A stretch of DNA of 38,268 bases from the NCBI GenBank assembly GCA_002269645.1, contig NIVC01004681.1, positions 1 to 38,268 on the forward strand, written 5' to 3'. The notes under the pieces were generated by a model, which saw nothing but the letters and a program-made list of their open reading frames with translations, was not told where the DNA came from and did no database searches. The position numbers were made by a program, and so were the translations under genes. Below are positions 1,947 to 36,197 of this stretch, piece by piece. Numbering within the stretch: position 1 is the stretch's first letter; each line of letters opens with the position of its first letter. The DNA comes from Macrostomum lignano (taxonomy: Eukaryota).

Positions 1947-4024
1947 AAGCTGAAATATCAAAGCTGAAGAGAGAATGAACTGAGGTATCAAGGCTTGGAG
2001 GGAATTGTTGAGATGTCAAGTCTTGGGGGGGGGGGAATTCTGTGGATTGGGGATTCCTTCCATGAGGGCTGCTTCTAATGGATATCTTTAGATAGGTGAT
2101 TCATTGGGAAATTCCATCGATGGGGGATTCTTTCGATGGAGGGTTCTTTGAATGGGGGATTCTTTAGATGAAGGATTTTTTGGCCTAGGATTTTATTGAT
2201 GGGGGATTATTTAGACGGGAGACTCTTTGAATTCTTTAGATGGAGTTTATTTGGAGTATGATTCTTTGGATTATTTGGACGGGGTTCTTTAGATGAGGGG
2301 ACTCAGATTCAGATTCTTCAGATTCAATGATTCTTTTGATGGAGGTTTATTTGGATGAGAGAATATTTGCATTATTTTGATCGGGATTCTGTGGATGGGG
2401 GATTCTTTGGATAGGGATGGATGGGGGATTCTTTAGATTGGGATGGATGGGGGGATTCTTTGGATAGGGACGGATGGGGATTCTTCGGATCGGGGATTCT
2501 ATCGATGGGGGTTTCTTTGGATGGGGATTCTCTGCATGTGAGATTCTTTGTATCGTGGATTCTATGGGTGGTGGATTCTTTGGATGGGGGATTCTTTAAA
2601 TTTGAGATTCAGTTGGGTGAAATTTTATTGCGTGGAAAAACTGTGGTTTGAGTTTGGACGAATAGCCCCAACGGGGGTTGGAATTAGATAGCTGAGGAAA
2701 TTGTTTCACTAATCTTGGTGGGGGTAGTTTCTATCAGGGGATGCTTGCTCGGAAGAGAATTCTAAGATGTCAAGATTTATAGGGGGAATTATTGAAATAC
2801 CAGGTACATGTATAAAATCTTACCTATTGGAATTAATGAGATGTGAAGGCTTAAGAGGGACTTTGGGGGATTGCAAGGCTTAAGAGGGACTTGCTGAGAT
2901 GCAAGACTTGTGGGGGAGAATTGCTGAGATTTCAAGGCTTAACGGGGAACTGCTGAGATGTCAAGGCTTTGGACGGGGATAAATTGGTAAGATGTCAAGG
3001 CGTTGGACGGGGAGAAATTGGTAAGATGTCAAGGCGTTGGACGGGGAGAAATTGGTAAGATGTCAAGGCGTTGGACGGGGAGAAATTGGTAAGATGTCAA
3101 GGCTTTGGACGGGAAGAAATTGGTAAGATGTCAAGGCTTGGGGGAATTTTATGAGGTGTCGAGGCTCGGGGGAATTGCTGAGATGTTAAGTTTTGGGGGG
3201 AATTCTATGGATTGATGATTCTTTGGATGAGGGATGCTTCTAATGGATGGATATCTTTGGATAGATGATTCATTAGGGAATTCCTTTGATGGGGCATTGT
3301 TTCGATGGAGGGTTTTTCGAATAGTTGATTCTTTAAATGAAGGATTCGTTAGATGGGGGTTATTTGGACGGGGGTTCTTTAGATGAGGGGATTCTTTGGC
3401 CAAGAATTCTATTAATAGGGGGATTATTTGGATGGGAGATTCTTTGGATTCGTTGGATGGGGATTATTCGGACGGGGTTCTTTAGATGAGGGAATTCTTT
3501 GGCCAGTTATTTCTTTGATGGCGGATTATTTAGATGGGAGATCTATGGATTATTTAGATGGGAGATCTATGGTTTATTTAGATGGGGATTATGATGTGAA
3601 TTATGATGTGATGTGATTCATTGGGGGGATTCTTTGGATATGGATGGATGGGGATTCTTTAGGTAGGAATGAATGAGGAAATTCTTTGGATAGGAATGAA
3701 TGAGGAAATTCTTTGGATAGGGATGGATGGAGGATTCTTTATATTTGGATTCTGTGGATGAGGGATTCTTTGGATGGGGATTCTGTGGATGAGGGATTCT
3801 TTGGATGGGGATTCGTTAGATAGGGGGCTTCTGTAGATCGGGAATTTCTTGAGTAGGGGATTCATTGAATGGGGAATTATTCGGATCGGTGATTCTATCG
3901 ATAGGGGTTCTTTGGATGGGGGATTCTTTGCATGTGAGATTCTTTGCATCGGGGATTTTGTGGATGGGGAAAACTGTGGTTGGAGTTTGGACGGAAAGCC
4001 CCAACGGGGGTTGGGATTGGCTAG
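1947..4024 (+). mobile_element. Non-autonomous Helitron-like segment of G-rich degenerate minisatellites, ending in a canonical 3' terminus
   Basis: Recurrent GAGATGTCAAGGCTT and GGGGATTCTTTGGAT motifs. ~2010-2690 is duplicated at ~3175-4020. Terminal hairpin CCCAAC-GGGG-GTTGGG (4000-4015), then ATTGG-CTAG|T. 5' TC end not found. Confidence 0.65.
2971..3139 (+). repeat. 34-bp tandem repeat, 5 copies (GGACGGGGAGAAATTGGTAAGATGTCAAGGCGTT)
   Basis: Units read directly starting at 2971, 3005, 3039, 3073 and 3107. Confidence 0.95.
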
Positions 4025-4639
4025 TCCATCCAATATACTAAAAATGAAAATCTTGCTTGTTTGTTTGTTTGTACGCAATCGATTAGAGAAAAAATGGCTG
4101 GACCGATTTTCATGAGACTTGCACTGTTCGATCAGAAATTTTCCCGTGACGGTACATGCATCGTGGCTAAGAAATTTCTCGATGCTAAAGGCATAAAATA
4201 TTCGAAAAACATGCTTTTTTGCAAAGTTCAAGCAAACTTTTCGACTTGAAATGCATTGTAAGAATGCTAGAGAAAAAACTGACTGGTTGAATTATGATTC
4301 TGAAATAGATTGCATCATAACTGAATTGTAACTCCGACTTGAATTGCGTCACAGTATTGAAAATGCTGTGTGGAAGCGTAGCAACAGACTTGATTTAGAT
4401 TGCGTAACCATATTGTTAACTGATACTGACTGACTGAGAAATTGTTTATGTCATAACTGCCTCGTGTGATTTACTCTATGCTTGGAGTTTTGAAACTCCA
4501 AATAGAAGTGCTAAAATTCATGTTATCAAAACGATGAGAGCTAGCCTAGAGGTAAACAGACTGACTGCTAAATGCAGGGACGATGGTTCGAATTTTTAGA
4601 GAGTTTTTTTAATTAAAGTTTTTTAACGCCAAGAAAACT

Positions 4640-5160
4640 AAAAAATCATGGAAGCGTCATGTAAAAAATCATAAAAGCGTTATGTAAAAAATCATAAAAG
4701 CGTCATGTAAAAAATCTTAGAAGCGTCATGTAAAAATTATAGAAGCGTCATGTAAACAATCATAGAAGCGTCATGTAAAAAATCACAGAAGCGTCATGTA
4801 AAAATCATAGAAGCGTCATGTAAACAATCATAGAAGCGTCATCTAAACGATCATAGAAGCGTCATGTAAAAAATCATAGAAGCGTCATGTAAAAATCATA
4901 GAAGCGTCATGTAAACAATCATGGAAGCGTCATGTAAAAAAATCATAGAAGCGTCATGTAAAAAGCATAGAAGCGTCATATAAACAATCATAGAAGCGTC
5001 ATATAAAAAATCATAGAAGCATCATGTAAAAATCATAGAAGCGTCATGAAAAATCATAGAAGCCTCATTTAAAGACTAATGAAAGTGTCATTTAAAAAAT
5101 TAAGAAGCATCATGGTAGAATAAAAGAAGCGTCATGTCAGACATGAAAGGTGTCATGTAA
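4640..5160 (+). repeat. 22-23-bp minisatellite (AAAAAATCATAGAAGCGTCATGT), about 19 good and 4 degenerate copies
   Basis: Tandem units read directly. Confidence 0.95.
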
Positions 5161-5919: not shown

Positions 5920-5990
5920 TTAGGGTTAGGTTAGGGTTAGGGCTAGGGTTAGGTTAGGGTTGGGGTTAGGTTAGGGTTAGGGCTAGGGTT
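5920..5990 (+). repeat. Interstitial telomere-like array (TTAGGG with TTAGG, CTAGGG and TTGGGG variants)
   Basis: Read directly. Confidence 0.95.
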
Positions 5991-6128: not shown

Positions 6129-7813
6129 GCTGCGAAACGTCCACTCGTCAACTCGTCAAGTGACCAACCCAGCAAACGGACAAAGGTAAGTATTTCGGTT
6201 CTGCAAACCACTTTTCTAATGATTTTTATACTTTATATAATTTTCTGAAAGCCTGTAGTAACACTTTTTAGAATCAAAATAAATGAATATTGTAATTGGT
6301 TTTCTGTAAGCATTAAGTAACTTTTTCTAGACTATAAAAGTGGTTAGGGTTTTCTAGACTATAAAAGTGTCATCCAAAATCTATTTTTTTCCTCAATCTG
6401 GTTGAATTGCTTTCCCAGTGGCAAACGACTGATGATGATGATGTGCCTTGCGAGCCTCACCTTTCGGCCTCACCTTGCGAGCCTCTGGTGCCTCTGGTGC
6501 CTCAGCGTGGCTCGGCCTCACCTCAGCGGCCACCGCATTCGGCCTCGGCCAGTGCCAGCAGTGCCACAACGGTGCCGAAGTGCCACAGCGGTCCAACCGG
6601 CCGTTCTTCAACGGTCCAACCGACCGGAAATTCTCATGAAGCGGTGAGTGTGTCACAATATTCACGTCATTCCTAAAGAATTTAGCAGACAGTAAATTTA
6701 ATGTATTTTTGTGTCAGAAAGTCAAACATTATTTCGCGTAGTAAGTTTTTCAGGAAGGGCACAATTCTTTTAGTAATCACGTTCAGATCAATACTTGTAA
6801 CCGGAAGTTTTTAATAAAAAGTATTCAGAACGCGATCATTAAGATTTTCAAGGGCAAGAACTTGATTTCTATTTATACTTTATATAATTTTCTGAAAGCC
6901 TGTAGTCACACTTTTTAGAATCAAAATAAATGAATATTGTAATTGGTTTTCTGTAAGCATTAGGTAACTTTTTCTAGACTATAAAAGTGGTTAGGGTTTT
7001 CTAGACTATAAAAGTGTCATCCAAAATCTAAATTTTTCCTCAATCTTGCTGAAATGCTTTCCCAGTGGCAAACCAATGATGATGTGCCCTGCGAGCCTGT
7101 GGTGCCTCTGGTGCCTCAGGTCTCCGGTGACTCGGCCTCACCTCAGCTGCCATCACATTCCGCCTCGGCCAGTGCCACAACGGTGCCAAGGAATTGTCCA
7201 ACCGGCCGTGTACATTCACATGAAGCGGTGAGTGTGTCACAATATTCACGTCATTCCTAAAGAATTTAGCAGACAGTAAATTCAATGTATTTTTGTGTCA
7301 GAAAGTCAAACATTATTTCGCGTAGTTTTTCAGGAAGGGCACAATTCTTTTAGTAATCACGTTCTGATCAATACTTGTAACCGGAAGTTTGAAAGTATTC
7401 AGAACGCGATCATTAAGATTTTCAAGGGCAAGAACTTGTAACTTGATCTTGATCTTAAAATTGGTTTCTTTTCCGTATTGGTTCGTGCATTTAATGTTCA
7501 ATTTTGTTTCATTTAGGATTTGAAGACGCTTGCGTGTAGAACGCACTTTAATTTACTGAATTCTGCGCAAAGTGATCTGGCGCGCAGGATTCAGTACGCT
7601 TCAAGCGAATTCGCAAATTGGACAGAAGACGAGAAGGGCCAGTTTTTACGGGCGTTTAAAAAATTCGGCAAAGAGTTTTCGAAGATCGCCGCCGCCATCA
7701 ATAGCAAGACTATTGCACAATGTGTGGCATTTTATTATAGCTCAAAGTATGAGCCTAAATTTAAGAATATGTACGCCGCCAAGAAGCGAGCAGCCAGGCG
7801 GAAGCGTCGATGA
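6129..7813 (+). CDS. Spliced gene for a small nuclear protein with a corepressor-type SANT domain (MIER/RERE/MIDEAS/NCoR class). Exons 6129-6185, 6419-6643, 7066-7227, 7517-7813.
   Basis: GT-AG junctions, all phase 0, no internal stop. Last exon reads WTEDEKGQFLRAFKKFGKEFSKIAAAINSKTIAQCVAFYYSSK, then a basic tail KKRAARRKRR and AATAAA at 7955. Start is unresolved: CCAG|GCT at 6129 is either an acceptor or a damaged ATG-GCT. Confidence 0.75.
6225..7438 (+). repeat. Tandem duplication of an intron+exon unit (6225-6863 vs 6872-7438)
   Basis: Near-identical intronic sequence at offset ~647. The duplicated exons (WQTTDDDDVPCEP... and WQTNDDVPCEP...) differ by in-frame indels. Confidence 0.95.
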
Positions 7814-8088
7814 ATTACATAATAATTATAATATTATTTCTTTAAGACAATTTATTTGTGCAAATAATTCAGGTTCAGGCATTATCTTATTTGAAAAACT
7901 TTTCTTTCTTTTTATTATATTCTTTCTGATTTTATCTGATTTGTGAGTTTGAGAAATAAATAAACCGTTTAAAAGTATTGTTTTTGATTTTGAGAAAAAA
8001 ATAAGCTGTTTAAAAATATTTAACGATGCGTAATTTTCTCGATTTCCCCTATTTTAAATATATAATTTACTAGAATCGAGAAAAGCAG

Positions 8089-9781
8089 ATGCGAGCTTTG
8101 GAATCAGAAAACGCCTGGCTAAAAGAAATGCTGCGAATTCAGCACGTCCTCATTATAAGCCAACGCAGGACCCTAGAATCGGTTCAAGGTTCTCCAAACC
8201 CAAAAATGCCTAGTGTAAGCCGTAAAATTTTAGATACCAATTCTTAATTCCATATTTTAACTAAGCATTCATAGTCTTTCTGCGAAAGCTTTAAATAAAA
8301 AAAGTAGTCAATTTACAAACTTATAAAAAAGTTTATAAGCACAATCAAGTCGTTTAGTGTTCAGTGTCAAATAATCTTTTTATTATCCAACACGCTTTTT
8401 CCAAGTAAGTTTTCCATGCTTTTAATGGCAAATGAATCAAAATTACATGATAACTTTAGCTAAATATATTTATATAACCTCAAATATAACCTGTCCAGCC
8501 AGCTGAAGGTGCCGGTGCCGGTGCTGCCGGTGCCACTATGACGGCCGCCTACACTGCCACATCCGCTGCTACCGCCACCTCCGCTGCTACTTCCACCACC
8601 GCCACCTCCGCTGCTACCTCCACCACCACCAGCTCCGCTGCTGCCGCTGTAAGTATTTTGTATCTGCTAGTATTCACGTTTACTTACTTGTAGCAGATCT
8701 ATATAAGCGGTATTCAGCACGCTATGCAGAAAGATAGCATAGAAACCCTGGCGCAAATTTTACGAGCTCGTAGTATAGTATAGCATGGCATAGCATGATA
8801 CCTTGCCCCAGATTCTACACAGGCCTACGATATCGTATAGATGTAAATTAGCAAGATGTACATTAATGTTCATTCGATCTAAATACTACTCAATATAGAC
8901 ACCGGACGCGCGTCGGTCCGTTATTAATGGATCCTTGCCTGGAGGGCCATTATTCGATGTATGTAATAAATATTTATTGTCTGGTTTAATTGTTATTTTT
9001 CGTCTTTTATCTACTACTTTTAAAGTACTTTTACTTATACCCGTATTATTTTCTTTTATACCTTTTGTATTTTGAGTCCTAAATCGTAAGTCCATAAGCT
9101 CTTAACCTCGTAGTTGAGGTTATACTTTAAGTCTCTACATGCTCATACAAGCCTCATACATACTTTAATTGAAAAAATATAGGTAGACCTCGATGCCTCA
9201 TTCGGCAGTGGCGACGTCGGCAGTGGCAGTGGCAACGACGAAGGCCCTGCCGACGTCACTATCCGCGGCCCTACGCGGGGAGCTAGCTTAAAGGGTGCCC
9301 GAAAGGCAGCAGGACAAGCAGAAGTCCTCCGGCGGCTCCTTAACAACGATGACTCAGCAGTAACTGTTAGTGCTACCCGGAGCAAAGGCCGCGGAGCTTT
9401 TGCATCGTGTGCCCTCGCCAGAGGAGCATACGTATGCGAGTATGCAGGTAAGCTTCTTAGCAAGACGGAATCCGACACTCGCTACGTCGAGCTCGCCGAG
9501 GCCGACAAAGACACGTTTTTTTATTTAACTTTGATTTCAATGGCCGGGAATATGCTATCGACGCCACGGACACCGATCGCGTCGGAAGGTTCTTAAATCA
9601 TTCTCGGACAAAAAAAAACTGCCGAGTAGTCACCACCGGTGTCCAATGTCCGGGAGGCGTGATTCGACCGGCCCTATATTTCCAGACTACAAAATATGTT
9701 CCGAAGGGACGTGAACTTTTATTCGACTACGGCCCTAGGGACGCGGAAACTCTGGAGAGTTGTAAGTGGCTGAACGATTAA
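8089..9781 (+). CDS. SETD8/PR-Set7 (KMT5A)-like SET-domain lysine methyltransferase. Exons 8089(or 8074)-8214, 8499-8648, 8899-8958, 9183-9781. One 1-nt frameshift in the T7 run at 9516-9522.
   Basis: Motifs KGRGAFA, CEYAG, YAIDAT, GRFLNHS, ELLFDYG and KWL match the SETD8 family. All introns are phase 0 GT-AG. AATAAA directly follows the stop. About 311 aa if the frameshift is corrected. Confidence 0.85.
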
Positions 9782-10229
9782 AATAAAACTCGTTCTAAAA
9801 ATATTCCCGTAAGAAATCAATACAAGATAAAGCTTAAACATACTTAAAAAATCGATTTAGATCACTTACAATTCTTTACTTAATAGCTTAATTGCTTAGT
9901 TGCTTAATACTTAATTACTTCATGGCTGATTTATTGCTCATAATTTTTTTTCATTGACCTCCTTATATTTTCTTTTTTAATTTTTGGTTTGCTTAGTACT
10001 TCGTATTTTACTTTGCTTACAATTTTGTGTTGCTTTGCTTATCATTTTGCTTATTGGCTTGCTTTCCGCATTATTTTGCTTATTATTTTGCTTTTTGGTT
10101 TGATAATTGAAGATTTTCTTTGCCTAGTGTGCCATGCTTCGAAAAAAATAACATGGTCGATAATGAGATAAGAATGTCGCAGCATTTCCAAGAAATAAAT
10201 TCGATTACTTAATTCGAAACTAATTAATG

Positions 10230-11338
10230 TAAAGTTCCCGGTCTTTTTATATTATTTCTAGAACCTGAAGGGAGAATAATGCTCCAGACATATACTCTAG
10301 AAAATCAGTACACTTTCTTAGAAGGTCGGTATACTGATATGAAGTTTCTTCACTTTAGCTTCTGGCCATCCTAGGTTTTGGTAGTCGGACTTTCAGTTGT
10401 GTAAACATTCTGAAATCGTGTATAGACCTCCTAAAGCGAAAAATATCTTAAGTAGTTGTCAAACATTTTTCTATGCGGCCAAGTGAATCTCGACTTGGCT
10501 GTTGTGCGCTCTATTATGCTTGCCCATACAGTTAAGTAGTAAGTTTTTCAGCTCAAAGGTTAGGTACTATTGGGGCATTCAACTGCATGCTCTTGTTCTT
10601 AACCATACAAGTCCATGTTATACACTTTATTATGAGTAGCGCAATGAACGTTTGAGAGTCCTGAAGGTAACTCTCACCCTCGTCAGGAGAACCGACGTAT
10701 GCCTATGTCAGAGTAGTAAGTTTTTCAGGGGACATGCAATATCTGCCGTGTCTTGACCATACTGTCTTTAATGCCTCGTATAAGAATGTTTAAAGTCAAT
10801 TGTTACTCTGAGAATATATCAAGGAACTTATAAAAGTATTTTAGTAGAAATATGAGGGGCTATTCGCCCCTTACGAGGGGCATTTCGCCCCTCATAATTA
10901 TAAGCCCATCTTGACTACTAAATATCGTCGCTCAGTAGAGTGATAAGCGTAATAAAAAGACTGAGCGCACTCTTGCGATAAAGCAAAGATATGATATAAA
11001 TTTCCCTGTCTTTTTATATTATTTCTGGAATCTGAAGAGAGAATAATGCTCCAGACATCTACTCTAGAAAATCAGTACACTTTCTTAGAAGGTCGATATA
11101 CTGATATGACGTTACTTCACTTTAGCTTCTGGCCATCCTAGGTTTTGGTAGTCGGACTTTCAGTTATGTAAATGTGTTCAAAGTCAATTGTTACTCAGAG
11201 AATATAGGAAAGGAACTTATAAAAGTGTTTTAGTAGAGATAGGAGGGGCTATTTGCCCCTCAAGAGGGGCATTTCGCCCCTCATAATTTTAAGCCCATCT
11301 TGACTACTAAATATCGTCGCTCAGTAGAGTGATAAGCG
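10230..11338 (+). repeat. Diverged direct duplication (10230-10412 ~ 11001-11173; 10786-10949 ~ 11176-11338), with a ~370-bp segment present only in the first copy
   Basis: Shared strings such as GAGAATAATGCTCCAGACA...GTAGTCGGACTTTCAGTT and GAGGGGCATTTCGCCCCTCATAAT. Confidence 0.85.
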
Positions 11339-12320
11339 GATAATTCAGATCTAAATCTGAATCTCACCCTATTGGAAAAGAGGCACCCTGAGATCTCACT
11401 GTAGGATTGTAAGATTAGATAGTCCGTATAATATATGTTAGATGTGACCCCTATCTCATACCCGAAAAACGTATCTAAAGGTAAATCTCACCTAATCGGA
11501 AAAGTCTCACCCTGAGATCTCGGATTAGGATGGTATAGAAAATCCTAATGACAAGGTGACCTCTATCTCATACCTTGGAAAAGCGTCGAAAGTAAATGTC
11601 ACTCTATTAAGCTTTTTGGGTTAATTCCCCCCTGACCGCCTACGGAGGTCAATGGACCTCAAATAGTGGCTTAGGTTGATAGAGAAACGAAAGAATTTAT
11701 AGATTGTATTGCGGAAAAAAAAAGAAAAAAATACATGTATTCTTATGGTGAGGGGCTTCTCGCACATGGCGAGGGGCTTCTCGCGCCCCCTGGAGGGTTT
11801 AATAATTTTAAGCCCATCTTGACTACTAAATATCGTCGCTCAGTAGAGTGATAAGCGGATAATTCAGATCTAAATCTGAATCTCACCCTATTGGAAAAGA
11901 GGCACCCTGAGATCTCACTGTAGGATTGTAAGATTAGATAGTCCGTATAATATATGTTAGATGTGACCCCTATCTCATACCCGAAAAACGTATCTAAAGG
12001 TAAATCTCACCTAATCGGAAAAGTCTCACCCTGAGATCTCGGATTAGGATGGTATAGAAAATCCTAATGACAAGGTGACCTCTATCTCATACCTTGGAAA
12101 AGCGTCGAAAGTAAATGTCACTCTATTAAGCTTTTTTGGGTTAATTCCCCCCCTGACCGCCTACGGAGGTCAAGGGACCTCAAATAGTGGCTTAGGTTGA
12201 TAGAGAAACGAAAGGATTTATAGATTGTATTGCGGAAAAAAAAGAAAAAAATACATGTATTCTTATGGTGAGGGGCTTCTCGCACATGGCGAGGGGCTTC
12301 TCGCGCCCCCTGGAGGGGCT
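11283..12320 (+). repeat. Near-perfect 519-bp tandem duplication
   Basis: Units start at 11283 and 11802 and differ by a few substitutions and homopolymer lengths. Confidence 0.95.
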
Positions 12321-12406: not shown

Positions 12407-12486
12407 TTAGGGTTAGGGTTAGGGTTAGGGTTAGGCTAGGGTTAGGGTTAGGGTTAGGGTTAGGGTTAGGCTAGAGTTAGGGTTAG
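12407..12486 (+). repeat. Interstitial (TTAGGG)n array with TTAGGC/CTAGGG variants
   Basis: Read directly. Confidence 0.95.
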
Positions 12487-13021
12487 AAGGTTGACAGATA
12501 TTTTTAGATTTCCAAGGCTTATTGGGGGCATTGCTGAGATGTCAAGGGGGGAAGTTGATATGTTAAAGCTTGTGGGGGGGGGAATTACTGACATTTCAAG
12601 GCTGACAAGTTTTGACAGGAGATTTTTTAAGATTTCAAGGATACCTGTAGCTTATTAAAAAAACGTGTATTGCATTTCTTTGGCTCCCCAACGGGGGGCG
12701 TAGATTGCTAGTTAAGAAGCTACTTTTAACATCCACTTTATTTTTAAAATTTACTTTAGAAAGGTGCTTTGATCTGCTCAGGTCTAGAAGAGACAAAACA
12801 CCAGGAAACCAGAGTAGCCAGGGAAGATTTAAATATTTTTATTATACATGATTGCTTTAAATTTGCTTTTAAATTTTATAAGTGACACATTTCAAAGATA
12901 TGCCAAAATCAGTCTGTTCTAAAAGGGCATTTTCCAAAAATCCAGTAACATTTTTATGGAATCCAGGAACATGTTTATCGAATCCAGTAACATGTAACAA
13001 GTAACATAGTAACAAGATCTG

Positions 13022-13874: not shown

Positions 13875-15306
13875 AAGCTGCATTTTATGCATTGTATGCA
13901 TTTACATAAGCATATAAACACTTTCTCAAAAATAAGTTCAGATAGTGTAATTGCATGTTTATCCATCGTCAATATCCGTACATCCGGCCTTCGCCCCTCC
14001 TTAGCTCTAATTTTGCGCTAACTGTTTAAATATAACTAGCTGACCACTATGATTTACCATCGCCCATTGTCCGAAAGTGAATGAATAAACATATGCCTGT
14101 AGCATCAAAATGTCCGCTGTACACCAACAGCAGGTAATATAGGAGGGAAAAGGTTATTCTGTTGGCAGTCTTGCATTATTTTAATGACGTCGCAGTTACG
14201 CTACTACTACTAATAAGCAGCCTGAGCAACCTAGAAGTTGGATACTAAGTATTTTGTAGAAGCGTAGAAGCGATTCCCGTCGAAATCCGGGGTCAATAGG
14301 TCACTCTATGGGACCAGTCTGTTGTGCAATACTTAGCCTAGGCAAACGCTATAAAACGACTGAGGGAATTATTACGCTTTACTTGGCGCGTTGCCAAAAA
14401 AAACGGCGGCATCTACCGGCGCGACGCGAGCGTCTATACACACTTTAATAAATACCCAATCGTCTGACGGTAGCGGCGCCACTTTGGCGCCAATAGCGCC
14501 GAAGCTGGAGCCTTGGAAACTTGCAACTCTAGCCCTAAAAATATTGAGGGAATTATTACACTTTGTGGCAACGGCTGCCAGTCGACAGCGGAAGCACATC
14601 TAGCGACGTGTGTGGCGTCGTTAGAGCGAGCACAGCCTGGACTACATAGTGGGCTGGTCGGCCAGTCAGAATAGAACAGCTAAAAACTTCTATACTACTT
14701 ATGGTAGCAAGTAGCGGGTTTCTTAGGTGTAAAACGGCTGAAGATAGTTTAGCTTGCGTCGGACAGTCTCGCGACCGTCAAATTCCGACTATACGTGTCG
14801 AAATACATCGGACTAGGTGTCTTTGTTTTTTTCAAAGTGTCTCTGCCAAAATTTTGTACTTCGGGGTCTAAGGGATTGACTGGCCACTTTCCGGAAGTCT
14901 GTCGCGGCGGAATCTACCACGAGCAGGTGGCACCCAATTCCGATGAATGCAATTCGATAGAGCATCACTAGAGCTTTCCAACGACACCAAGAACGTCCGG
15001 AAATACCCAGGGGAAGGCTGGCTAATCGCACTCAAAGTGTCCAGCGTACCTCCATGCGCAGAAACGGTGAGGGGGCAATTACACTTTGCGGGAACGGCTG
15101 CCAGCCGGAAACGGTAGCACATCTATTGATGAGACAAACAGCATCCGACGCATGGATAGATGCTCTATCACTTCTTAAATTCTCACCTGCCCAGACATCG
15201 GTCACGAAAGTGATTTCCGAGTGCCCCTTAATTTTGATGGATCTCGGCCGGACTTGACCCCCTGTACTCTTGGATAAATGTAGAAGCGATCCCCGTCGAA
15301 ATCGAT

Positions 15307-16095
15307 AACCCTAACCCTATTTAACCCTAACCCTATTTAACTCTAACTCTATTTAACCCTCACCCTTTTTAACCCTAACCCTATTTAACCCTAACCCTAT
15401 TTAACCATAACCCTATTTAACCGTAACCGTCTTTAACCCTAACCCCATTTAACCCTAACCCTATTTAACCCTAACCCTATTTAACCCTAACCCTATTTAA
15501 CCCTAACCCTATTTAACCCTAACCCTTTTAAACCCTCACCCTTTTTAACCCTAACCCTTTTAAACCCTCACCCTTTTTAACCCTAACCCTTTTAAACCCT
15601 CACCCTTTTTAACCCTAACCCTATTTAACCCTAACCCTATTTAACCCTAACCCTATTTAACTCTAACTCTATTTAACCCTCACCCTTTTTAACCCTAACC
15701 CTATTTAACCCTAACCCTATTTAACCATAACCCTATTTAACCGTAACCGTCTTTAACCCTAACCCCATTTAACCCTAACCCTATTTAACCCTAACCCTAT
15801 TTAACCCTAACCCTATTTAACCCTAACCCTATTTAACCCTAACCCCATTTAACCCTAACCCTTTTAAACCCTCACCCTTTTTAACCCTAACCCTTTTAAA
15901 CCCTCACCCTTTTTAACCCTAACCCTTTTAAACCCTCACCCTTTTTAACCCTAACCCTATTTAACCCTAACCCTATTTAACCCTAACCCTATTTAACCCT
16001 AACCCCATTTAACCCTAACCCCATTTAACCCTAACCCTATTTAACCCTAACCCTATTTAACCCTAACCCAATTTAACCCTAACCCCATTTAACCC
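15307..16095 (+). repeat. Telomere-like 16-bp satellite (AACCCTAACCCTATTT), about 49 units with higher-order structure
   Basis: Strict 16-nt period. Variant units AACTCT, AACCAT and AACCGT recur after exactly 20 units (320 bp). Confidence 0.97.
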
Positions 16096-16340: not shown

Positions 16341-16350
16341 AGTGTCCGAG

Positions 16351-16608
16351 TTAGGGTTAGGGTTAGGTTAGGATTAGGGTTAGAAGGTTGACAGATATTT
16401 TTAGATTTTAAAGGCTTATTGGGGGCATTGCTGAGATGTCAGGGGGGGGGGAAGTTGATATGTTAAAGCTTGTGGGGGGAATTACTGACATGTCAAGGCT
16501 TACAAGGTTTGACAGGAGATTTTTTAAGATTTCAAGGATACATTTAGCTTATTAAAAAAACGTGTATTGCATTTCTTTGGCTCCCCAACGGGGGGCGTAG
16601 ATTGCTAG
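16351..16608 (+). mobile_element. Short TTAGGG array plus a second copy of the Helitron 3' terminal segment
   Basis: Nearly identical to ~12455-12711. Similarity stops exactly after CTAG|T (16605-16609). Confidence 0.8.
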
Positions 16609-17990
16609 TGAGAATACTCAACTTTGGCCCACCTTCGGGCTCCTAGTCTTTCTTTAGACTTGCCGTCAGACTGAGTTCTGACCCATTCGTCTATAAGACG
16701 AATCCCTGCCGGTCCGCGGTCTGTTACCGCCAAGTTATCTTCAGCTCCCCAAGTGAGCTCGCCTATCGGCCAGCGGTCTGACACCACCCAGCATCATCAG
16801 CTTCGCCTGATCTACACCAGCGCCTCGTCGCTTCAGCGCATCGCCGCTTCACTGTCCGCCTGACTGCAGCCTACAGCCGCCCTCGGTCACTCCGCCTCTC
16901 TCTCTCTCTCTCTCTCTGTGCAGCTGCCGGTAAGTTCCTGTTACTGATTTGTGCTCTAATTGCATTTGCTTATTTGTCCATTGTCTGATTAGAGAGCTGA
17001 GCCAGTTGTGATACCGTACCTTTTGCTGTATTTTTACTCAATAGTGAAGCCGCCTAATTGCCTGATTATTTGCCTAAGGGCCGAATTATTAACTATTAAC
17101 TAACCTCATCATTATTCACTCTTTCACCATCATTTCACTCATGGCTTGTTAAGCCTTTCTTCCGGGGTGGCAAAGCATAGGGAAGTTTGGGTAAGCTAAT
17201 GGCCTCTCTCCGTGCAAAGCCCGCCTGTGCGAGTGCGTGCCGCGGGTCCGTAAGTGCGTGCAGTAGAGGGTATTAGCGAGTCTTGGCACAGAATGGCAGT
17301 AGGAAGGTTGAAACCCCATGCTAACGCGTCCCTTCGCCCTAAGCAATCTAAACTATAGACAGTACATGTTCGCCTCATACTACTCTTAGTAATCAAAGTC
17401 GCAAGTCAGCCTCGCTCACAGCCACAAAGGATCCCCTGCTGAGAAATCCTCCAGATTGAGCCCAGAGTTTCCGATCATGCCCCAAGCAGAGTCCCTGTAC
17501 TCGGCTGCGTGTGTCTCCCCTGTTAGCCTAAATCTCCTGGTAACCATCCCAGGCGGGGCTCTAGCCTCGAGAGGTCTGGTAGAAAGATCCAGGTGCGCCA
17601 GGTCACATAGAGTGGTGGCAGCCACTCGGTCATACCATGACCGAGTGACCAACTATTGCACCTTGGCTACAGGTGGGGTCCATGTGGGTCCTTGGCCCTC
17701 TGGGCACGAAGCGCTACCAAAGCTACTAATCATGTGGGCGGGACAGTCTGGTGCTGGAGGACCGTCAGGTCATTGCCCGGTCATACGCAGCCTACGGTCA
17801 TTGCCCCCTCTAGCCATGCGTTCGTCTCTCAATAGGAGCGGACCGGCGACAAGGGCGGTTACATCAATTGCAATTAAATTGGCAATCAGCTTGTCAAAAC
17901 CTGCAAGTGACTTGTAATCAATTTGCAATAATTGCCCAATCCTTACAATCAGATTGCAATTTTGGACAATTTCCCACAATTTCGAGTGTC
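16609..17990. mobile_element. GC-richer non-coding element arm with (CT)11, a splice-donor-like GTAAGT and the right imperfect inverted repeat
   Basis: (CT)n at 16896-16917; CCG|GTAAGT at 16930; inverted similarity of 17840-17990 to 866-1005. Confidence 0.4.
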
Positions 17991-20518: not shown

Positions 20519-23500
20519 GTGACCGAACCTAACCAAACTGTTTCTGCCCCTGCTGCTGCTTACGGTGAGAGGGGTTTTCCTCAAAGGGCTGTACTTGAGG
20601 TGGTTTTCGCAGCCTTCAACAGAATTATGGAAGTTATTTTGGAGCCGCCGCTCACTGACTGGGAAGTAAGCCAGCTTGCTATCTGGACAGTGACGGAGGC
20701 TCTGGCGATTATCCTTAATTCTGGTGGAACTGCAGCCAGGGTAGGTGAAGCCGAAGCCACTTCGGTGAGCGGAGGCGGACCCGTGCCCTGAGCAATTATC
20801 ATAAAAATTTTGAATTGAACTATGGCTGTTAATAATAAAAAATAATTCTCTAAATTCTACCCTAAACATAGGGCACCTTAACTGCAATAAATTAAGCAAT
20901 AAAATGCATGAAATTATAATGTGGTTGCACAATGAAGATATAGACATTGGTCTTTTCTCAGAAACTGACCTCAAAAATGATGACAGGTTCTTTGTTCAAG
21001 GGTATGCGATTATTAGATTTGACATCCCTGACTGTCGAAGAGGACTTGCAATTGCTTATAAAAATAACTTGAAAATTTCGAATGTCAAAAAGTACTATGA
21101 CAACTCTCACCATGAGTTCATAAGCCTTGCTGTCAACCCCAACAATAACCCTAGTAGTACTCTAAGAATTTCCCTTTTATATAGAGCCCCAACCCTGATC
21201 GCATTACCACTGCTACACTTAAACAGCTACTCTCCCAACCTAGAACTCTTCTTATTGGAGAGCTCAACTGTCGCCATCTTATGCTGGGTGGGGACTGTGT
21301 AGAAAATTTTCACGGCAAGCAGCTATTTGAATGGCTTAATAATCATCCTGACCCTCCTTTCATCCTCAATTCCTATGGTGACTGCACCAGAATTAATAAT
21401 GGGGGGCAACACTGTAGGTAACGTCCTGGATCTATGCATTTGCACCCCAGATCTTGCCAACTCAATTAGTGAGGTGCTGGTAGGTGATGACCTCGATAGC
21501 GATCACCTACCTATTATTATTAAAGTCTCTTTAGACCCCAGCTCCAAAAATAGCCCCAAACCACTAAAAGGCTTATGGCTTACAGATTGGGAGGCCTTCA
21601 AATACGCCCTTCAAGATAAGCTTGAAAAGTGTAATTTGATCCAATCCCGAATCTCTACCCCTGAAGACCTTGACAGCGTGGTTGATAAGCTCACGGAAAA
21701 ATTTCGTGAAACTATAGAGGAAGTAGTTCCAGATAGAGATCCTAGAGAACAACTCCCTCCTGACATTATTGAAAAAATTAAGCACAGAAAGCTTAGAAAA
21801 CTTTTTAAGAAAACTAGAACTGACACATTTAGGGTTCAAGCAAATCAAGCTGCCAAAGAAATTAGGATAGCAATCAGAATGCACAGGTACAGAAAATTCG
21901 AAGACCTATGCAAGAAAATTGCCAAAACGAGTTACAGAAGGGAGCCGCGTCAATTCTGGATTGATTTAAGAAAATGACAGGACAAGAAAATAAGGGGTTA
22001 CCGCTGAAACTGAACAAGAAACTGCCAATCTGTTTCAAGATTTCCTAAATGATCAGATGCAGCCCCATCCTGACACCAATTCCCTACTCTACGAGGAGGT
22101 TATGGCCAACAAAGATCATGAGATCTTTCGACCCCATGATAGCATGGTTAGAGCTCTCACCTACCATCGGGACAGGGCTGACCCCGACGACCCCGATAGG
22201 GAAGACACTTAATCAGACATTCTTAACATCCTTGACATTGATGTACTAATGGAAACAAAAAATCTCAGAACTGGGGGTGCCCCTGGTCCTGACAAAATCC
22301 CAAACATTGTACTCAAGCGCGGGCTTAGCCCTGACACTGTAATACCCATAGCAAAAAATTTTAATTCAAGCTTTCTTCTGGGCTACTTCCCCAAGGCCTG
22401 GTAAAAGGCAACCATTAAAATGATCCCAAAGCCTAAGAAATCTAGGCAAGACATCAATAACTATAGACCAAATAGTTTAACCTCCTGCCTGGGAAAGCTT
22501 TACGAAAAAATAATTGCCAGAAATCTCAGAATGATTTTGGAAAACAAGGGGCTTTTAAACGAAGACCAATGTGCGTACAGACAAGACCACTGTACGTTTG
22601 ACAACATTGTGCGACTCACTGACGATATACTAAAAATGAACCAATGGAGACATGCGACCCTTAGTGTATTCTTTGACGTTAAAGGAGCCTTCGATGGCGT
22701 CTGGCACAGCTACCTTAGGCATAGGATCCTTGTAAGCAACCTGCCTCACAATGTGATCCGTATCATCTCCAGCTACCTTGAGGATAGGGGGATTTACATT
22801 CAGATTGGAGGGGCTATCAGCAATGGTTTCCGACCCGCCGCTGGCGTCCCGCAAGGTGGGGTTTTATCCCCGATTCTCTTTATTATATACTTCAGCTCGA
22901 TCCCGATCCCGCGTGACATCAAGTTTAAGAAAAGTCAGTTCGCAGACGACCTTGCTGTCTGGGCAAGTGCCAGGACGTCGGTAATGACGGCTAAGAGGCT
23001 GAACAGCTATCTAGTCGTCCTGAAAAAAGGGCTAGATGATGTAGGTATTACCATCAATCCTAACAAAAGTAAGACGGTAGCTTTTTTCAAGTTTAAGAGC
23101 CATTATTCGACTGGCCCAGCCAGGCCGCCGCTTAAATAAGGACAGGATCTCATCCCTTATCATGACTCGGTCACCTTCCTTGGAGTCACCCTCGACAAAG
23201 ACTTAAGCTACAAGCAGCATATCTCCAAGACTGCAGGCATCACCATCGCCAAGCTTGAAGCCATGAGGAGAATAACTCGCAATACTAGGATTTCGCAACT
23301 GGCGCTTCGGCTGCTCTCCTCCTCAAAGTCTTACATTGAGAGTGGCATGACCTACGGAGCGCCCATACTAGTCAACGCTTCTGATGCTCTCCTCCAGAGA
23401 TTCCAACTCCTCCAAAATCAAGCCCTTAGAATCGCGCTTGGTGCCCCCAGGTACATTAAAATTAGCTATCTACATGAAACTACGAATATGCCCAGGTTCA

Positions 23501-23646
23501 AAGAGAGAATATGGAACCTGGGCCTAGGATGGTTCAAAAAAGTTCTGCTCACAGGGGTGCATAACTTCGATATTGACCTCAAAGAATGGAGCAGACCAGG
23601 GTTTAGAGAACGCGTTACTACTAAATTTAGAAAAGCCAAAAAATAA
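20519..23646 (+). mobile_element. Degenerate non-LTR retrotransposon (Jockey/I-group-like): probable ORF1 tail (20519-20791) and ORF2 APE endonuclease + reverse transcriptase (~20822-23646)
   Basis: APE motifs LNIGHLNC, FSET, GELN, LDL, SDH. RT motifs PGPD, IPKP, YRP, FDGV, GVPQGGVLSP, QFADD, FLGVTLD. C-terminal QNQALR. Several frameshifts and in-frame stops. No RNase H seen. Confidence 0.92.
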
Positions 23647-24204: not shown

Positions 24205-25133
24205 CCAAACTCGACACTTATATCGACACCAAACGCGGCCAGTATAGCTGACCAGGCAATCAACAATAACAAAGCTACTCACCAAGAAAATACTCACAGA
24301 CTGGCAGCTGGTATAGCCGACCAAGAACAAAGTAGCAGCCAACCTAAATTCAAGATAACTCCAGTAGTATTTGAGACTGCTCCAGAAGCCAAAGATCCAC
24401 TCAAGTTTGAGTGGTTTCTCAATATAAACTTTCCAAACATCAGAATTCAATCGGTCAAGAACATATATCATGGCGTTGGCTTCTGCGTGTTAACAACGAG
24501 CGAAAAGGACATGAACGCGCGGCTGACATCACCACTCATTGAACCGGAAATAAATGGACAAACTGTGGATCGACGACTACCAAGAAAAAGACCAATTAAG
24601 CAAGGCGATGATGGCTAATTTTTAAACCTCATAGTGGTGTTATACAAGCCATCTCCTACTTCAAATATAAAAATGAGGAGGCTGAGGCGGACTGTGATGA
24701 TGCTTTAGCCTACCTTATGGAAATCATCAACATAGATGTAACTATGGCAATAAGCAGTCTCAGGTCTGGGGGTGCACCTGGGCCAGACAATATCCCAAAC
24801 ATTGTTCTCAAAAAGGGCCTGAGACTAAACTCTATCAGAATTATCACAAAACTTTTCAATACCTGCTCCCTTCTGGGCTACTACCCGCGGCTCTGGAAAC
24901 AGGGTATTGTCAAAATGATTCCCAAACCTAATAAACCAAAACATCAAGTAGATAGCTACAGACCAATTTGTCTAACCTCATGCTTGGGTAAACTTTATGT
25001 GAAAATACTTGCTAGGAATATTCGAACTATACTGGAAAACCTGAATATTATCAATGAAGATCAGTGCGCCTATATACAAGACCATTGCACCTTTGATAAC
25101 ATTGTCAGAATCACCGATGATGTGCTTAAGATG
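24205..25133 (+). pseudogene. Second, internally deleted LINE copy: ORF1-like open frame (24205-24618) and RT N-terminal fragment (~24700-25133)
   Basis: The RT fragment (GAPGPDNIPN...IPKPNK...YRPICLTSCLGK...QDHCTFDNIVR) is paralogous to 22270-22640. The ORF1 assignment is a weaker inference. Confidence 0.8.
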
Positions 25134-26149
25134 TTGCAGCTCACCCCAGTGGCACCGATATTATCGGTAGAGATGTACCAATTGGGACCAATAATATCAG
25201 CTTGCGAGCATGTCGTGTGTCAAGACGACACGATTTCTACCCGAAAATATCATACTGAGCTATGCACTTAAATAGCATAGGGGCCAGTATATTATACCGG
25301 CTAGCTAACGAATCAAACGGCTCAGATTTAAATTTGTTTGACAAAATGAAAAAATTGACAAGTGATTGACAGAAAATGCAATGATGGAATTAATCCAATT
25401 GCATCTTGCACTTGCAGGAGGGAGCATAAATAGCAAATTTAATCAAACAAAATATTGTTGGGTCATTTGTACTTCATATTAGCTTAGGCCTAGTTATCCA
25501 ATAAGACCAACAATCAGCATTATTCCTTGCCTACCTATTCTGCTATCCATATGAATACTATACTATTTAATAAATTGGCAGTTTATTACAGTTCTTGATT
25601 TTCATATTTCTTGTAGCCTCAAGGTCATTTGCATGCAGAGTACTTAAATTTTTAAGTACTCTTACCTAGTACATTAGAAAATCAGAAATCCCTGGCTATA
25701 TAACATATTGGCTATAGCTTAAACTAGCTATTATTATTTTCAACTAGCCAGATTAGCTATTTCACAGAGCAAGCCATACAAAACCAATTATTCAATATTT
25801 CCTTTTAAAATGTCTAGCCAATTACCTGGATTTTCCCTAGCCAACTCTTTGACTACCTGGCTGCCTATTCTCATAATCTAGCTCTTCTTGGTCTCCTCCT
25901 AGTCTATTCTCTCTGACTGCTCTTCCTAGCTTGCTCTCGTCTCACTAAGCCTACTGCCATTAGCCTACTCTGCCTAGCCTACCCTCCCTAACTTGCTCCC
26001 CTAGCCTACTTCTCTTGATCTGTACTCCATGGCTAGGTTTCACTAGCCTGACCATATCCTCCTAGTCACTTTTCCTGTCCATTTCTTTGGCTACCCCCTA
26101 GCCTATTCCTCATATCTTGCTATTCTGCCTGGGTCACTGGCCTACTCCT

Positions 26150-26555
26150 ATGTCCAGCTCTGCTTGCCTTGCTCCCCTGGCCTGCTCCCAGCTCCCCCTG
26201 ACCTGCTCCCAGCTCCCCCCTGACCTGCTCCCAGCTCCAACTGGCCTGCTCCGCTGGTCTGCTACCCTGACCTGCTCACCTGGTCTGCTTCCCTGACCTG
26301 CTCCCCTGGTCTGCTTCCCTGACCTGCTCCCCTGGCCTGCTCCCAGCTCCCCCTGGCCTGCTCACCTGGTCTGCTTCCCTGACCTGCTCCCCTGGCCTGC
26401 TCCCAGCTCTCCTGGCCTGCTCACCTGGTCTGCTTCCCTGACCTGCTTCCCTGACCTGCTCCCCTGGTCTGCTTCCCTGACCTGCTCCCCTGGCCTGCTC
26501 CGAGCTCCCCCTGGCCTGCTCCCCTGGTCTGCTCCCCTGACCTGCTCTCCCTGGC
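26150..26555. repeat. Pyrimidine-rich 13-14-bp minisatellite (CCTGCTCCCCTGG / TCTGCTTCCCTGA variants)
   Basis: Read directly; grades into degenerate copies back to ~25850. Confidence 0.9.
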
Positions 26556-33042: not shown

Positions 33043-34930
33043 CAGGGTGGCCGCGGTCAGGGAAAGTCAGGGAAATTCTTAGGAAGTCAGGGAAAATTTG
33101 AAAGTCAATTAGAAAATTGAGAAAAAATTGTGAGACAAGAAAGAGGCTAATCGATAGCACTAAGTAGCTAGAATAGTAAATCATTTTTGTTTGTTCCATG
33201 TATTGTTATTTTAAAAGCTTATTTGAAATAGGCAGATACTTGTTCTTAAATGAATTATTTATTGGCTTGTACATATTGCTAATCTATAATTGCTGTGCTA
33301 ATCACACTGACAGTAAAATATATAGTCCATACTATGATAATATGGTATTAACCAGGCCATTAATAGAAAGGTCCGTCTATATTTTGTTTTAATCACTATT
33401 TATTGCTATTCTTTTGTATAAATTTATATTGCGTTTAGGTTTTTAGTAGACTTATATACGAGCTAAATAAGTTGTTGCAAATACAAAATAGCTTGCTAAT
33501 GTTACAAAGATTATTTTAATTTTATGTACACCTTACTACTAACTCCTTCCAGTTCCAGCCTTATGAGTTCCACTTCAAAAAAACAACTTACTATGACAAG
33601 AAGTGGGAAGAGGAATTCCCCTGGGTGACTTCCTACTCGAGCAATCGAAATGCAGCTTACTGCAAAAGCTGCGAAAAGAAAGTCGAACTTTCCAATATGG
33701 GAAAGACGGCCTTAACTTCCCATGCTAAAAGAAAAACTCATCTAAATCATCTAGTCGCAACAACACCAAGTATTCGAGCATTCCTTATGCCCTCGGGCAG
33801 CACTACTAATGGCGGTACTGTTGCTGCAGTTGCTGCTACAAATGACGAAGTACTAAAAGGCTTAAAAACAGTGCTGAGCAAGCTAAGCTACTATGGGTTT
33901 TTTTACATGGTAGACTAGCACTTTTTATTTCGCTCAGCAGCTGGAATTACTGATCGATTCAAAGCCATGTTTACTGACAGTGCCATTGTAAATGAAATGT
34001 CCCTTGGCTACGACAAAATCCGATACATAATCAACTTCGGATTGGCACCACTTCTAAAGGAGCAGTTAACAACTATTTTGAATAACCAACGGTTCTTTTC
34101 TGTTAACTTTGACGAGAGTTTAAACAAAATCATGCAGCAATCGAAAAAATGGACATTCATGTTCGTGTCTGGACTGAGGAGAAAGACTCAACTGAGCCTC
34201 CGGTAAAGACATTTTACTTCGATTCTCAATTTCTTCTTTCATGCACTGCAGCAAATCTCTTGGAGTCTTTCCTAGCATCTTTCAATGGCATCTCTGTCAG
34301 CAAGATATTACAAGTGGGCATGGATGGACCTAATGTCAACTGGGCCTTTCACAAGCTACTGGATGCCTATGTTGCTAGTAGTAGTGCTACGGATGCAAAG
34401 ATCATTCACTGCTGATCCTGCTCTCTACATCGAGTCCACAGAGCATTTAACCAGGGTGTCTTAGTCAGTGGTTGGGACATTAAAGCTATTTTGAGCTCCT
34501 TTTACTACCTGTTCAAAAATGCGCCTGCACGTCGCAGACTTCATTGAGGCCACAGGTACACGTGTGTTCCCTCTAAAGTTCTGTTGCCTGTCGTTGGCTA
34601 GAAAATGTCACTGTTGCTAAGCGTGCACTTGCCATTTGGCCCGACTTATGTACCTATGTACAAACTGCTTCACAGAATAAGGCAATGAAAGCACAAGTCA
34701 GTGTCAACCGCCACATTGAGCTCCTGCAGTCTTGCACGAAAAGGCCATTGCAAGCGGCGAGGTTTGCATTTTTTATTTATTGCCAAGCCGAATGCGAAGG
34801 GCTTCAGCGGAAGGAACCTGGTTGAGGGGTTCCTGGGCAGCAATTGCATTTGCGACCCTGAATGCATTAGAAAACAGTGTCTTTCTGACTAACTCATTGC
34901 TATTCCCCGGTGAACCGCAGGATGGCTTTC
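33043..34930 (+). mobile_element. Truncated hAT DNA transposon: left terminus plus degenerate transposase (from 33563)
   Basis: CAGGGTGGCC terminus with GTCAGGGAAA subterminal repeats. BED-like CKSC...H...H finger. FDES, MDGPNVN, CSLH, FPLKFC and RWLEN motifs. Multiple frameshifts and stops. Right end not found. Confidence 0.88.
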
Positions 34931-35825: not shown

Positions 35826-36197
35826 GGCCGAGGCGGAGGAAGCGGAGGTGGCGGCCGAGGCGGAGGTGGCGGCCGAGGCGGAAGCGGGACGGGGTCAGTT
35901 CAAAGTAAGTCTGTATTAATATATATGTGTACTAGTATTATACATGTACGTATGCATATAAATGGCAAAAATATTTACAAAAAAAATTCTGTATTGTAGA
36001 GGTGTTACGTCTGCAACAAGTTGGGCCATCTGGCCAAGAATTGTTGGCACAGAAAAAAAGACAAAGCAACCACCGACTCCAAACCCAACAGGAACAGGAG
36101 CAAAAGCAACAGGAGTCGCCGCAACAGCAGCACGAGAAGCAAGACTAACAGTCTAAGTTGCATTTTTTGCATTTTTTTCATTTTTGCATTATATTAG
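35821..36197 (+). pseudogene. Two-exon fragment: Ala/Glu-rich exon (to 35904) spliced to a CCHC zinc-knuckle exon (from 36000) with an Arg/Ser/Asn-rich tail
   Basis: AAA|GTAAGT...TGTAG|AGG, a 95-nt phase 0 intron, giving GRGQFK-RCYVCNKLGHLAKNCW (CX2CX4HX4C). 5' end missing. Confidence 0.65.

Follow-up and report, generated by a model that had tools for sequence, protein, structure and literature searches.

Human SET8 (KMT5A/SETD8) is a monomethyltransferase which, according to the descriptions in PMC3356298 and PMC8897848, is turned into a dimethyltransferase by the Y334F mutation via an altered affinity for an active-site water. Another residue of this enzyme, His347, forms a hydrogen bond with the backbone carbonyl of H4K16 and the H347F mutation raises the substrate affinity (PMC3741215). 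Apicomplexan Set8 acts as an H4K20 mono-, di- and trimethylase because one residue of its substrate channel is changed, as summarised from Sautel et al. 2007 in PMC5685513, and in CpSET8 (PDB 4LDG) Phe537 replaces human Tyr334, on which ground its authors predict multiple methylation (PMC9487757). Large divergent KMT5A-like families are also found in Hydractinia, Hydra and sea urchin (PMC10368294). Here we analysed a SET8-like locus on the forward strand of contig NIVC01004681.1 of Macrostomum lignano, where the whole stretch of 38,268 nucleotides is referred to as the window. The reading that we favour, with modest confidence, is that we are dealing with a small gene of two exons, or with a copy that was very recently damaged, encoding a divergent lysine methyltransferase of SET8/KMT5A type with phenylalanine at the Phe/Tyr switch, and that this Phe was inherited.

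The catalytic domain belongs to the SET8/KMT5A family far beyond chance, as a sequence-only reading of the window had proposed. A Pfam SET match was found with E=7.8e-16 and a phmmer search of the PDB returned human SETD8/KMT5A chains at E~1e-18, while the next families, SETD2 and EHMT, were matched at 1e-11 to 1e-10. The chain ranked first in the HMMER output, 3F9W, is that of the engineered Y334F mutant and likewise carries ELLFDYG. Residues 62-236 were modelled with AlphaFold2 using a 111-sequence alignment, which gave a mean predicted local distance difference test score (pLDDT) of 94.4 and a predicted template modelling score (pTM) of 0.86. In a Foldseek comparison of this model with the PDB the 24 best matches are all SET8 chains with template modelling (TM) scores of 0.65-0.84 when normalised by the query and 0.58-0.91 when normalised by the target. 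These chains are human except for Cryptosporidium CpSET8 (4LDG), which occurs at rank 18 and was also matched by phmmer with E=8e-12. Superposition with 3F9W_A and 1ZKK_A gave TM scores of 0.84/0.91 and a root-mean-square deviation of 1.8 Å. The fold is a minimal SET domain with N-flank and C-flank helices of SET8 type and without the pre-SET and post-SET zinc clusters.

All seven columns that are invariant in the 111-sequence alignment (A2) were observed to be retained (Y63, G65, D103, R112, H116, E154 and Y159). These comprise the equivalents of Tyr245 and Tyr336, the Gly of EY.G, the Asp of DAT, the Arg and His of R..NH and the Glu of ELL, and the motifs GxG, E-Y-x-G, R-x-x-N-H-S and E-L-x-x-D-Y-G are all there. 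The sequence-only reading had named CEYAG, RFLNHS, ELLFDYG and ESCKWL, and a script located each of them exactly where it had been placed (Table 1). It had also assigned the Phe of ELLFDYG to the Tyr334 switch. HMMER aligns this residue exactly to SET8 residue 334 and the MAFFT alignments concur, so that the Phe is not placed elsewhere. The protein ends in KWLND-stop where the SET domain lies at the extreme C-terminus and the Pro of PWL-x-x is replaced by Lys. The segment corresponding to GCYMYYF, which had been called diverged, does differ, while its exact residues depend on the repair of a frameshift that the stretch spans: it reads TFFLFNF if one T is added, and the equivalents of Gly269-Cys270-Tyr271 are then Thr-Phe-Phe.

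HMMER was run exhaustively against 1.84 billion cluster representatives and gave 2229 relatives, of which the best 153 were aligned with MAFFT together with the window protein and human SET8. In the 334 column, Tyr was observed in 114 sequences (human SET8 included), Phe in 35 (window protein included) and other residues in five. Phe is found in 34 of these best 153 relatives, or 22%. The nearest relative, P0005, is a 349-residue protein translated from a transcript of SRR19430222; it shares 46-47% identity with the window protein, has a C-terminal SET domain and carries ELLFDYG. It is the only clearly closest relative and the other Phe-type examples are ~30-39% identical. A word-indexed protein search returned three matches with 31-33% identity, all of them with ELLFDYG. 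One of these is a EukProt protein, and from its 'tig…' gene name we take it to be from Cyanophora. The named Phe-type proteins include three Clavelina lepadiformis paralogues and one Salpingoeca infusionum protein, and Phe-type sequences occur in tunicates and choanoflagellates and also on virus-like contigs. In a neighbour-joining tree the cluster holding the window protein is entirely of Phe type and, when the switch column was removed, the nearest neighbour was of Phe type in 83% of 1000 bootstraps. Because Phe occurs in 22% of the relatives, including the closest one, the Phe state is old and shared.

The Phe-type relatives also differ from the Tyr-type relatives outside the switch. At the 51 conserved columns of the family, the 24 Phe-type relatives deviate on average 9.3 times compared with 4.6 times for the 83 Tyr-type relatives. 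His347 is kept in only three of the 25 Phe-type sequences (window protein included) of alignment A2 but in 52 of the 83 Tyr-type sequences. We noticed that the 334 and 347 columns co-vary and that position 347 is mostly Asn or Phe in the Phe-type sequences; Phe at this position mimics the affinity-raising H347F mutation. As judged from these alignments, Phe334 together with a non-His residue at 347 appears to be a recurring, old combination and an inherited subfamily trait rather than a fresh switch in a duplicate of a canonical SETD8.

The gene that would encode this protein can be read as two exons (Table 1). The proposed exon 1 has a length of 111 nt and a guanine-cytosine (GC) content of 0.68, and GTAAGT immediately follows it at the 3' side, as read in the DNA and checked by script. 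The donor of the proposed intron is GTAAGTAT and its acceptor is ...ATATAG/GTAGACC. The GC content of the intron is 0.35 compared with 0.54 in exon 2, and the SET reading frame is kept when position 8648 is joined to position 9183, with the junction in phase. Exon 2 forms a GC island of 45-66% between flanks of 25-36%, and both exons are embedded in DNA of 0.30-0.35 GC. No in-frame ATG was found within the frame of the SET exon, which opens directly after the AG of the acceptor (...AAAATATAG/GTAGAC). The model protein has 236 residues once one T is added to a run of seven T residues in exon 2, and 61 low-complexity residues precede the modelled catalytic domain. The AATAAA that abuts the stop codon may serve as a polyadenylation signal. 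Exon 1 consists of a 9/27-nt periodic repeat and, given this repeat, it is a model and not a proof. The two-exon arrangement is coherent but unproven, and we infer the splicing from the signals in the DNA.

Table 1. Positions in the window of the features of the SET8-like locus and of its surroundings
Feature	Position	Strand	Description
Exon 1 (proposed)	8538-8648	+	ATG and 36 codons, Ala/Thr/Ser-rich low-complexity, MTAAYTATSAAT...SSAAAA; ends in phase 0
Intron (proposed)	8649-9182	+	534 nt, AT-rich; GTAAGT donor, ...AAAATATAG acceptor
Exon 2	9183-9781	+	linker, N-flank helix and entire SET8-like catalytic domain; stop TAA 9779-9781
CEYAG	9435-9449	+	Tyr is the equivalent of catalytic Tyr245 of SET8; column invariant (Y63, G65, alignment A2)
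T7 homopolymer with frameshift	9516-9522	+	downstream part in the -1 frame; one added T gives a 236-residue reading frame (...DKDTFFLFNFDFNGREY...)
RFLNHS	9587-9604	+	S-adenosylmethionine-binding NH motif; R, N, H and S invariant or nearly so
ELLFDYG	9713-9733	+	Phe codon TTC 9722-9724 at the Tyr334 Phe/Tyr switch; next Tyr (Tyr336 equivalent) retained
ESCKWL C-flank	9755-9772	+	Cys at the His347 position, Lys at the conserved Pro348 position
AATAAA	9782-9787	+	abuts the stop codon
SANT/Myb terminal coding exon	7517-7813	+	acceptor ...TCATTTAG, stop TGA 7811-7813
Interstitial (TTAGGG)n arrays	5920-5990, 12407-12486, 16343-16404	+	
Telomere-derived satellite	15306-16095		49 copies of the 16-bp unit TAACCCTAACCCTATT, derived from the complementary telomere repeat
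Paired ~270-bp segments	12444-12712, 16341-16609		91-96% identical, 3897 bp apart
Nested tandem duplications	10227-12317		spacings of ~389, 520 and 767 bp
Degenerate non-LTR retrotransposon	20814-23643	+	APE endonuclease and reverse transcriptase over several frames
Truncated second reverse transcriptase	24612-25268	+	
Further satellites	2392-3970, 4639-5137, 26170-26555		strong strand composition skew
Transposable-element-like open reading frames	33520-34412, 36000-36194, 37629-38114	+	

Several observations weigh against the favoured reading. The open reading frame (ORF) is broken as assembled. The low complexity of exon 1, together with an acceptor that has a poor polypyrimidine tract, makes the start of the gene a model only. 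The SET gene lies in a region that is rich in repeats and transposable elements and contains telomere repeats, where the other clear host gene is represented by one SANT exon only. Sixteen of the 51 conserved family columns deviate in the window protein (among them Tyr271 to Phe, Cys to Ala before DAT, Asp338 to Pro and Pro348 to Lys), which places it among the ~3% most divergent sequences; such divergence could reflect relaxed constraint or an altered substrate. Past P0005, the relatives are approximately equidistant (36-39% identity) and mixed in type, the Phe fraction among the five nearest neighbours being 0.40 compared with the base rate of 0.22, and the membership of a discrete Phe clade therefore seems only weakly resolved by these sequences.

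The frameshift at 9516-9522 had been pointed out in the sequence-only reading and is borne out by the homologues. In tblastn both halves of the SET domain are matched but in different frames: the frame open from 9183 onwards gives ...GRGAFASCALARGAYVCEYAGKLL...DKDTFF, and past the T7 run the -1 frame reads FNFDFNGREYAIDAT...GRFLNHS...GRELLFDYGPRDAETLESCKWLND-stop. Because the locus carries this frameshift, its function is unproven. The one-base defect may have arisen during assembly or may be a young mutation that inactivates the gene, and we lean slightly to an assembly error. The strongest rival to an intact gene is a real pseudogene, where a genuine 1-nt deletion in the T run marks a decaying, functionless SET8-like copy among subtelomere-like repeats. 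This is a serious possibility, although we would not place it first. The break between the two tblastn halves, the SET exon without an in-frame ATG and the divergence at 16 conserved columns are all consistent with decay, as are the neighbouring satellites, interstitial TTAGGG arrays and dead retrotransposons, and no identical or close protein was found in a collection of 15 billion proteins. On the other hand, there is no second lesion, and the one observed affects a homopolymer, the kind of sequence in which errors of assembly accumulate. The two half-frames are free of premature stops across 236 codons. Every invariant or catalytic residue is kept, and so are the splice signals in phase, the stop codon and the AATAAA.

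The sequence-only reading had described the protein as a natural switch in a neofunctionalised paralog with altered product or substrate specificity. We took this to mean a recent paralog of the canonical SETD8 monomethylase of the host in which the change from Tyr to Phe produced an H4K20 dimethylase. The Phe at the switch, together with the dimethylase activity of human Y334F, agrees with this proposal, and the His347 position and the GCYMYYF segment differ as well. The distribution of Phe does not agree with it since the residue is common to 22% of the family and to a closest relative of only 46-47% identity, so the change is ancient. Moreover, the identity of the window protein is only 27-30% with human SET8 and ~33% with a coral KMT5A (P0007), it lacks a KMT5A-like N-terminal region, and a single SET copy is present within the window. 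We consider a recent neofunctionalised paralog to be improbable. The novelty of the Phe type is likewise not upheld, as PMC5685513 and PMC9487757 have described Set8 enzymes of Apicomplexa that are naturally of Phe type or multi-methylating.

An equally small chance is given to the SET domain being cargo of a mobile element or part of a large DNA virus that became endogenous, rather than belonging to a host chromatin gene. Two Phe-type members of the same neighbour-joining cluster are located on virus-like contigs, where P0048 adjoins a DUF5906 primase-helicase-like gene and Capsid_N, and P0116 is surrounded by closely packed ORFs of one strand together with Peptidase_S74. In its GC content the window gene stands out as an island amid AT-rich DNA, and the KMT5A-like expansions in Hydractinia, Hydra and sea urchin (PMC10368294) would also be in keeping with mobility. 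At the locus itself, however, no viral or transposable-element domains were found within several kb, an apparent spliceosomal intron is present, tblastn detected one SET copy in the window, and scans of IMG/VR and JGI metagenome contigs gave no relatives. Capture of the SET gene by a transposable element was ruled against by the missing terminal inverted repeats, long terminal repeats (LTRs) and flanking direct repeats around the gene (7800-11300), and the nearest reverse transcriptase is 11 kb away. A viral or element origin is thus suggested solely by the surroundings in which two distant relatives of Phe type are encoded and by nothing at the locus. These two relatives are minimal SET8-like proteins of 138-144 residues (L002 1007-1423 and L004 8001-8435; also L005 and L006) on contigs inside the eukaryote assemblies GCA_034680565.1 and GCA_040384225.1. 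Next to them lie overlapping, closely spaced ORFs on one strand, and the neighbouring genes include Peptidase_S74, the DUF5906 primase-helicase-like gene and a weak match to the N-terminal domain of a major capsid protein. The methyltransferases of large DNA viruses, or of endogenous copies of such viruses, may include SET8-like rather than vSET-like ones.

Programmed slippage at the U7 run, either by the ribosome (-1) or during transcription, is very unlikely as the source of a full-length enzyme since, although the downstream frame is exactly -1 and a G-UUU-UUU(-UAU) slip (9513-9530) would give the same protein as an added T, the downstream RNA structure is not significant (z=-1.4, starting ~18 nt away), the heptamer in its frame does not follow the canonical X_XXY_YYZ pattern and homopolymer indels are a far commoner explanation.

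If the favoured reading of a gene, intact or restored by one T, is adopted, the complete set of S-adenosylmethionine-binding and methyl-transfer residues in a SET8 fold suggests that the repaired protein should bind S-adenosylmethionine and transfer methyl groups as an active lysine methyltransferase. The loss of the Tyr hydroxyl would free an active-site water and in turn permit a second, and possibly a third, methyl transfer. By analogy with human Y334F and apicomplexan Set8 the predicted product would be di- or higher methyl-lysine, and the enzyme, if intact, is probably active with an open channel that allows such methylation. A prediction beyond monomethylation is reasonable because Y334F makes human SET8 a dimethyltransferase; this effect, which the sequence-only reading had named, is documented in PMC3356298 and by the structures 3F9W, 3F9X and 3F9Y. 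H4K20 would be the default guess for the target lysine, though several positions in the substrate groove differ. The change from Tyr to Phe at the switch is a real fact of the alignment and appears to be a reasonable predictor of product multiplicity, but it is neither rare nor new.

The surroundings of the gene can be described as follows. The SANT exon (Table 1) is located 0.7 kb upstream of the ATG of the SET gene on the same strand and has the appearance of the 3' end of another gene of the host. It matches Pfam Myb_DNA-binding at 2e-10, its closest solved structures are the SANT1 domains of CoREST (RCOR1/3) at ~1e-10, and a search of the protein collection gave no relatives of it. Telomere repeats are found in both orientations, as interstitial arrays and as the satellite derived from the complementary repeat, and give the region the look of a subtelomere or of DNA with telomere-derived satellites. 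Both of the ~270-bp segments begin with a TTAGGG run and flank this satellite, and they may have arisen by segmental duplication or form one composite repeat. Within the nested tandem duplications, the GC-rich palindromic sequence GAGGGGCxATTxGCCCCT (for example at 10845-10902 and 11240-11291) occurs in AT-rich DNA. The further satellites are of a 16/31-bp GGATGGGGGATTCTT type, a 34-bp type, a 23-bp type (22 copies) and a 13-bp type CTGGCCTGCTCCC (25 copies).

The best relatives of the reverse transcriptase ORF are unnamed metagenome proteins with 36-38% identity, followed by Lepidoptera at ~33%, and this low identity suggests a poorly sampled host lineage. The window is eukaryotic, and its TTAGGG repeats, non-LTR elements and CoREST-like SANT exon are weak pointers to an animal. 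The ORFs that resemble transposable elements include one with a Cys/His-rich N-terminal KSCEKK...HAKRKTH motif and one with a CCHC zinc knuckle (Pfam 1.6e-4), which was their only significant Pfam match. A 162-residue ORF of this kind carries an HFDFAENY...QSAYW motif that we take to be the one seen in repeated 'uncharacterised' animal proteins. A Pfam search of 20 further ORFs in the window found only SANT/Myb, APE endonuclease, reverse transcriptase and zinc knuckle domains, and the Rfam and tRNA scans of the window were empty.

If intact and active, this gene would be a further natural example of the Phe/Tyr switch setting the methyl number of SET8-type enzymes in evolution, and its product would be a compact enzyme, encoded with few introns, that could be compared biochemically. 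The locus alone changes no open question; mutagenesis and the apicomplexan enzymes have already established the mechanism. More useful than the single locus is the observation that approximately one fifth of the SET8-like clusters carry Phe and tend also to lack His347; because of this, the annotation 'SETD8-like' should not be equated with 'H4K20 monomethylase'. A wider idea, which we offer with considerable doubt, is that SET8-like proteins of the Phe334 type, having no His347 and a divergent groove, might constitute an old, scattered and undescribed subfamily of protists, some invertebrates and elements resembling large DNA viruses, that they might di- or trimethylate, perhaps on another substrate, and that the window gene might be a live member in DNA rich in telomere repeats, a setting reminiscent of the role at telomeres and in pericentric regions that is reported for apicomplexan Set8.

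Among the known systems, human SET8 is the best match of the window protein in both sequence and structure. The two share the minimal SET fold with its N-flank and C-flank helices and the C-terminal placement of the domain, and GxG, EY.G (Tyr245), NHS and DYG (Tyr336) are conserved in both, while the motif ELLFDYG is identical in the window protein and the human Y334F mutant. They differ in that the identity is only 27-30% in structure-based alignments and in the changes of His347 to Cys, Pro348 to Lys, Asp338 to Pro and Tyr271 to Phe among the 16 altered columns. Canonical metazoan KMT5A residues that are not found in the window protein are Tyr334, His347, Pro348, Asp338 and Gly269-Cys270-Tyr271. 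By inspection, the N-terminal regulatory region of KMT5A with its PCNA-interacting protein (PIP) degron is not in the model protein, where further upstream exons are possible, and no PIP-box-like Q-x-x-[ILM]-x-x-[FY][FY] occurs in the 61 residues before the modelled domain.

The apicomplexan enzymes TgSET8, PfSET8 and CpSET8 are natural members of the SET8 family with an altered channel residue, and the window protein likewise carries Phe. In contrast, they are much larger proteins and not its closest relatives, and the host of the window does not look apicomplexan, having a CoREST-like SANT exon as well as TTAGGG repeats and non-LTR retrotransposons. The families of Hydractinia, Hydra and sea urchin resemble the locus in having divergent SET domains of SETD8 type in addition to the one canonical KMT5A gene, whereas the window gene is short with a C-terminal SET domain. 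The closest likeness is with the uncharacterised Phe-type proteins: P0005 differs by a C2H2-like N-terminus, but these proteins and the window protein have in common a motif of ELLFDYG type, usually a non-His residue at position 347 and a departure from the canonical consensus.

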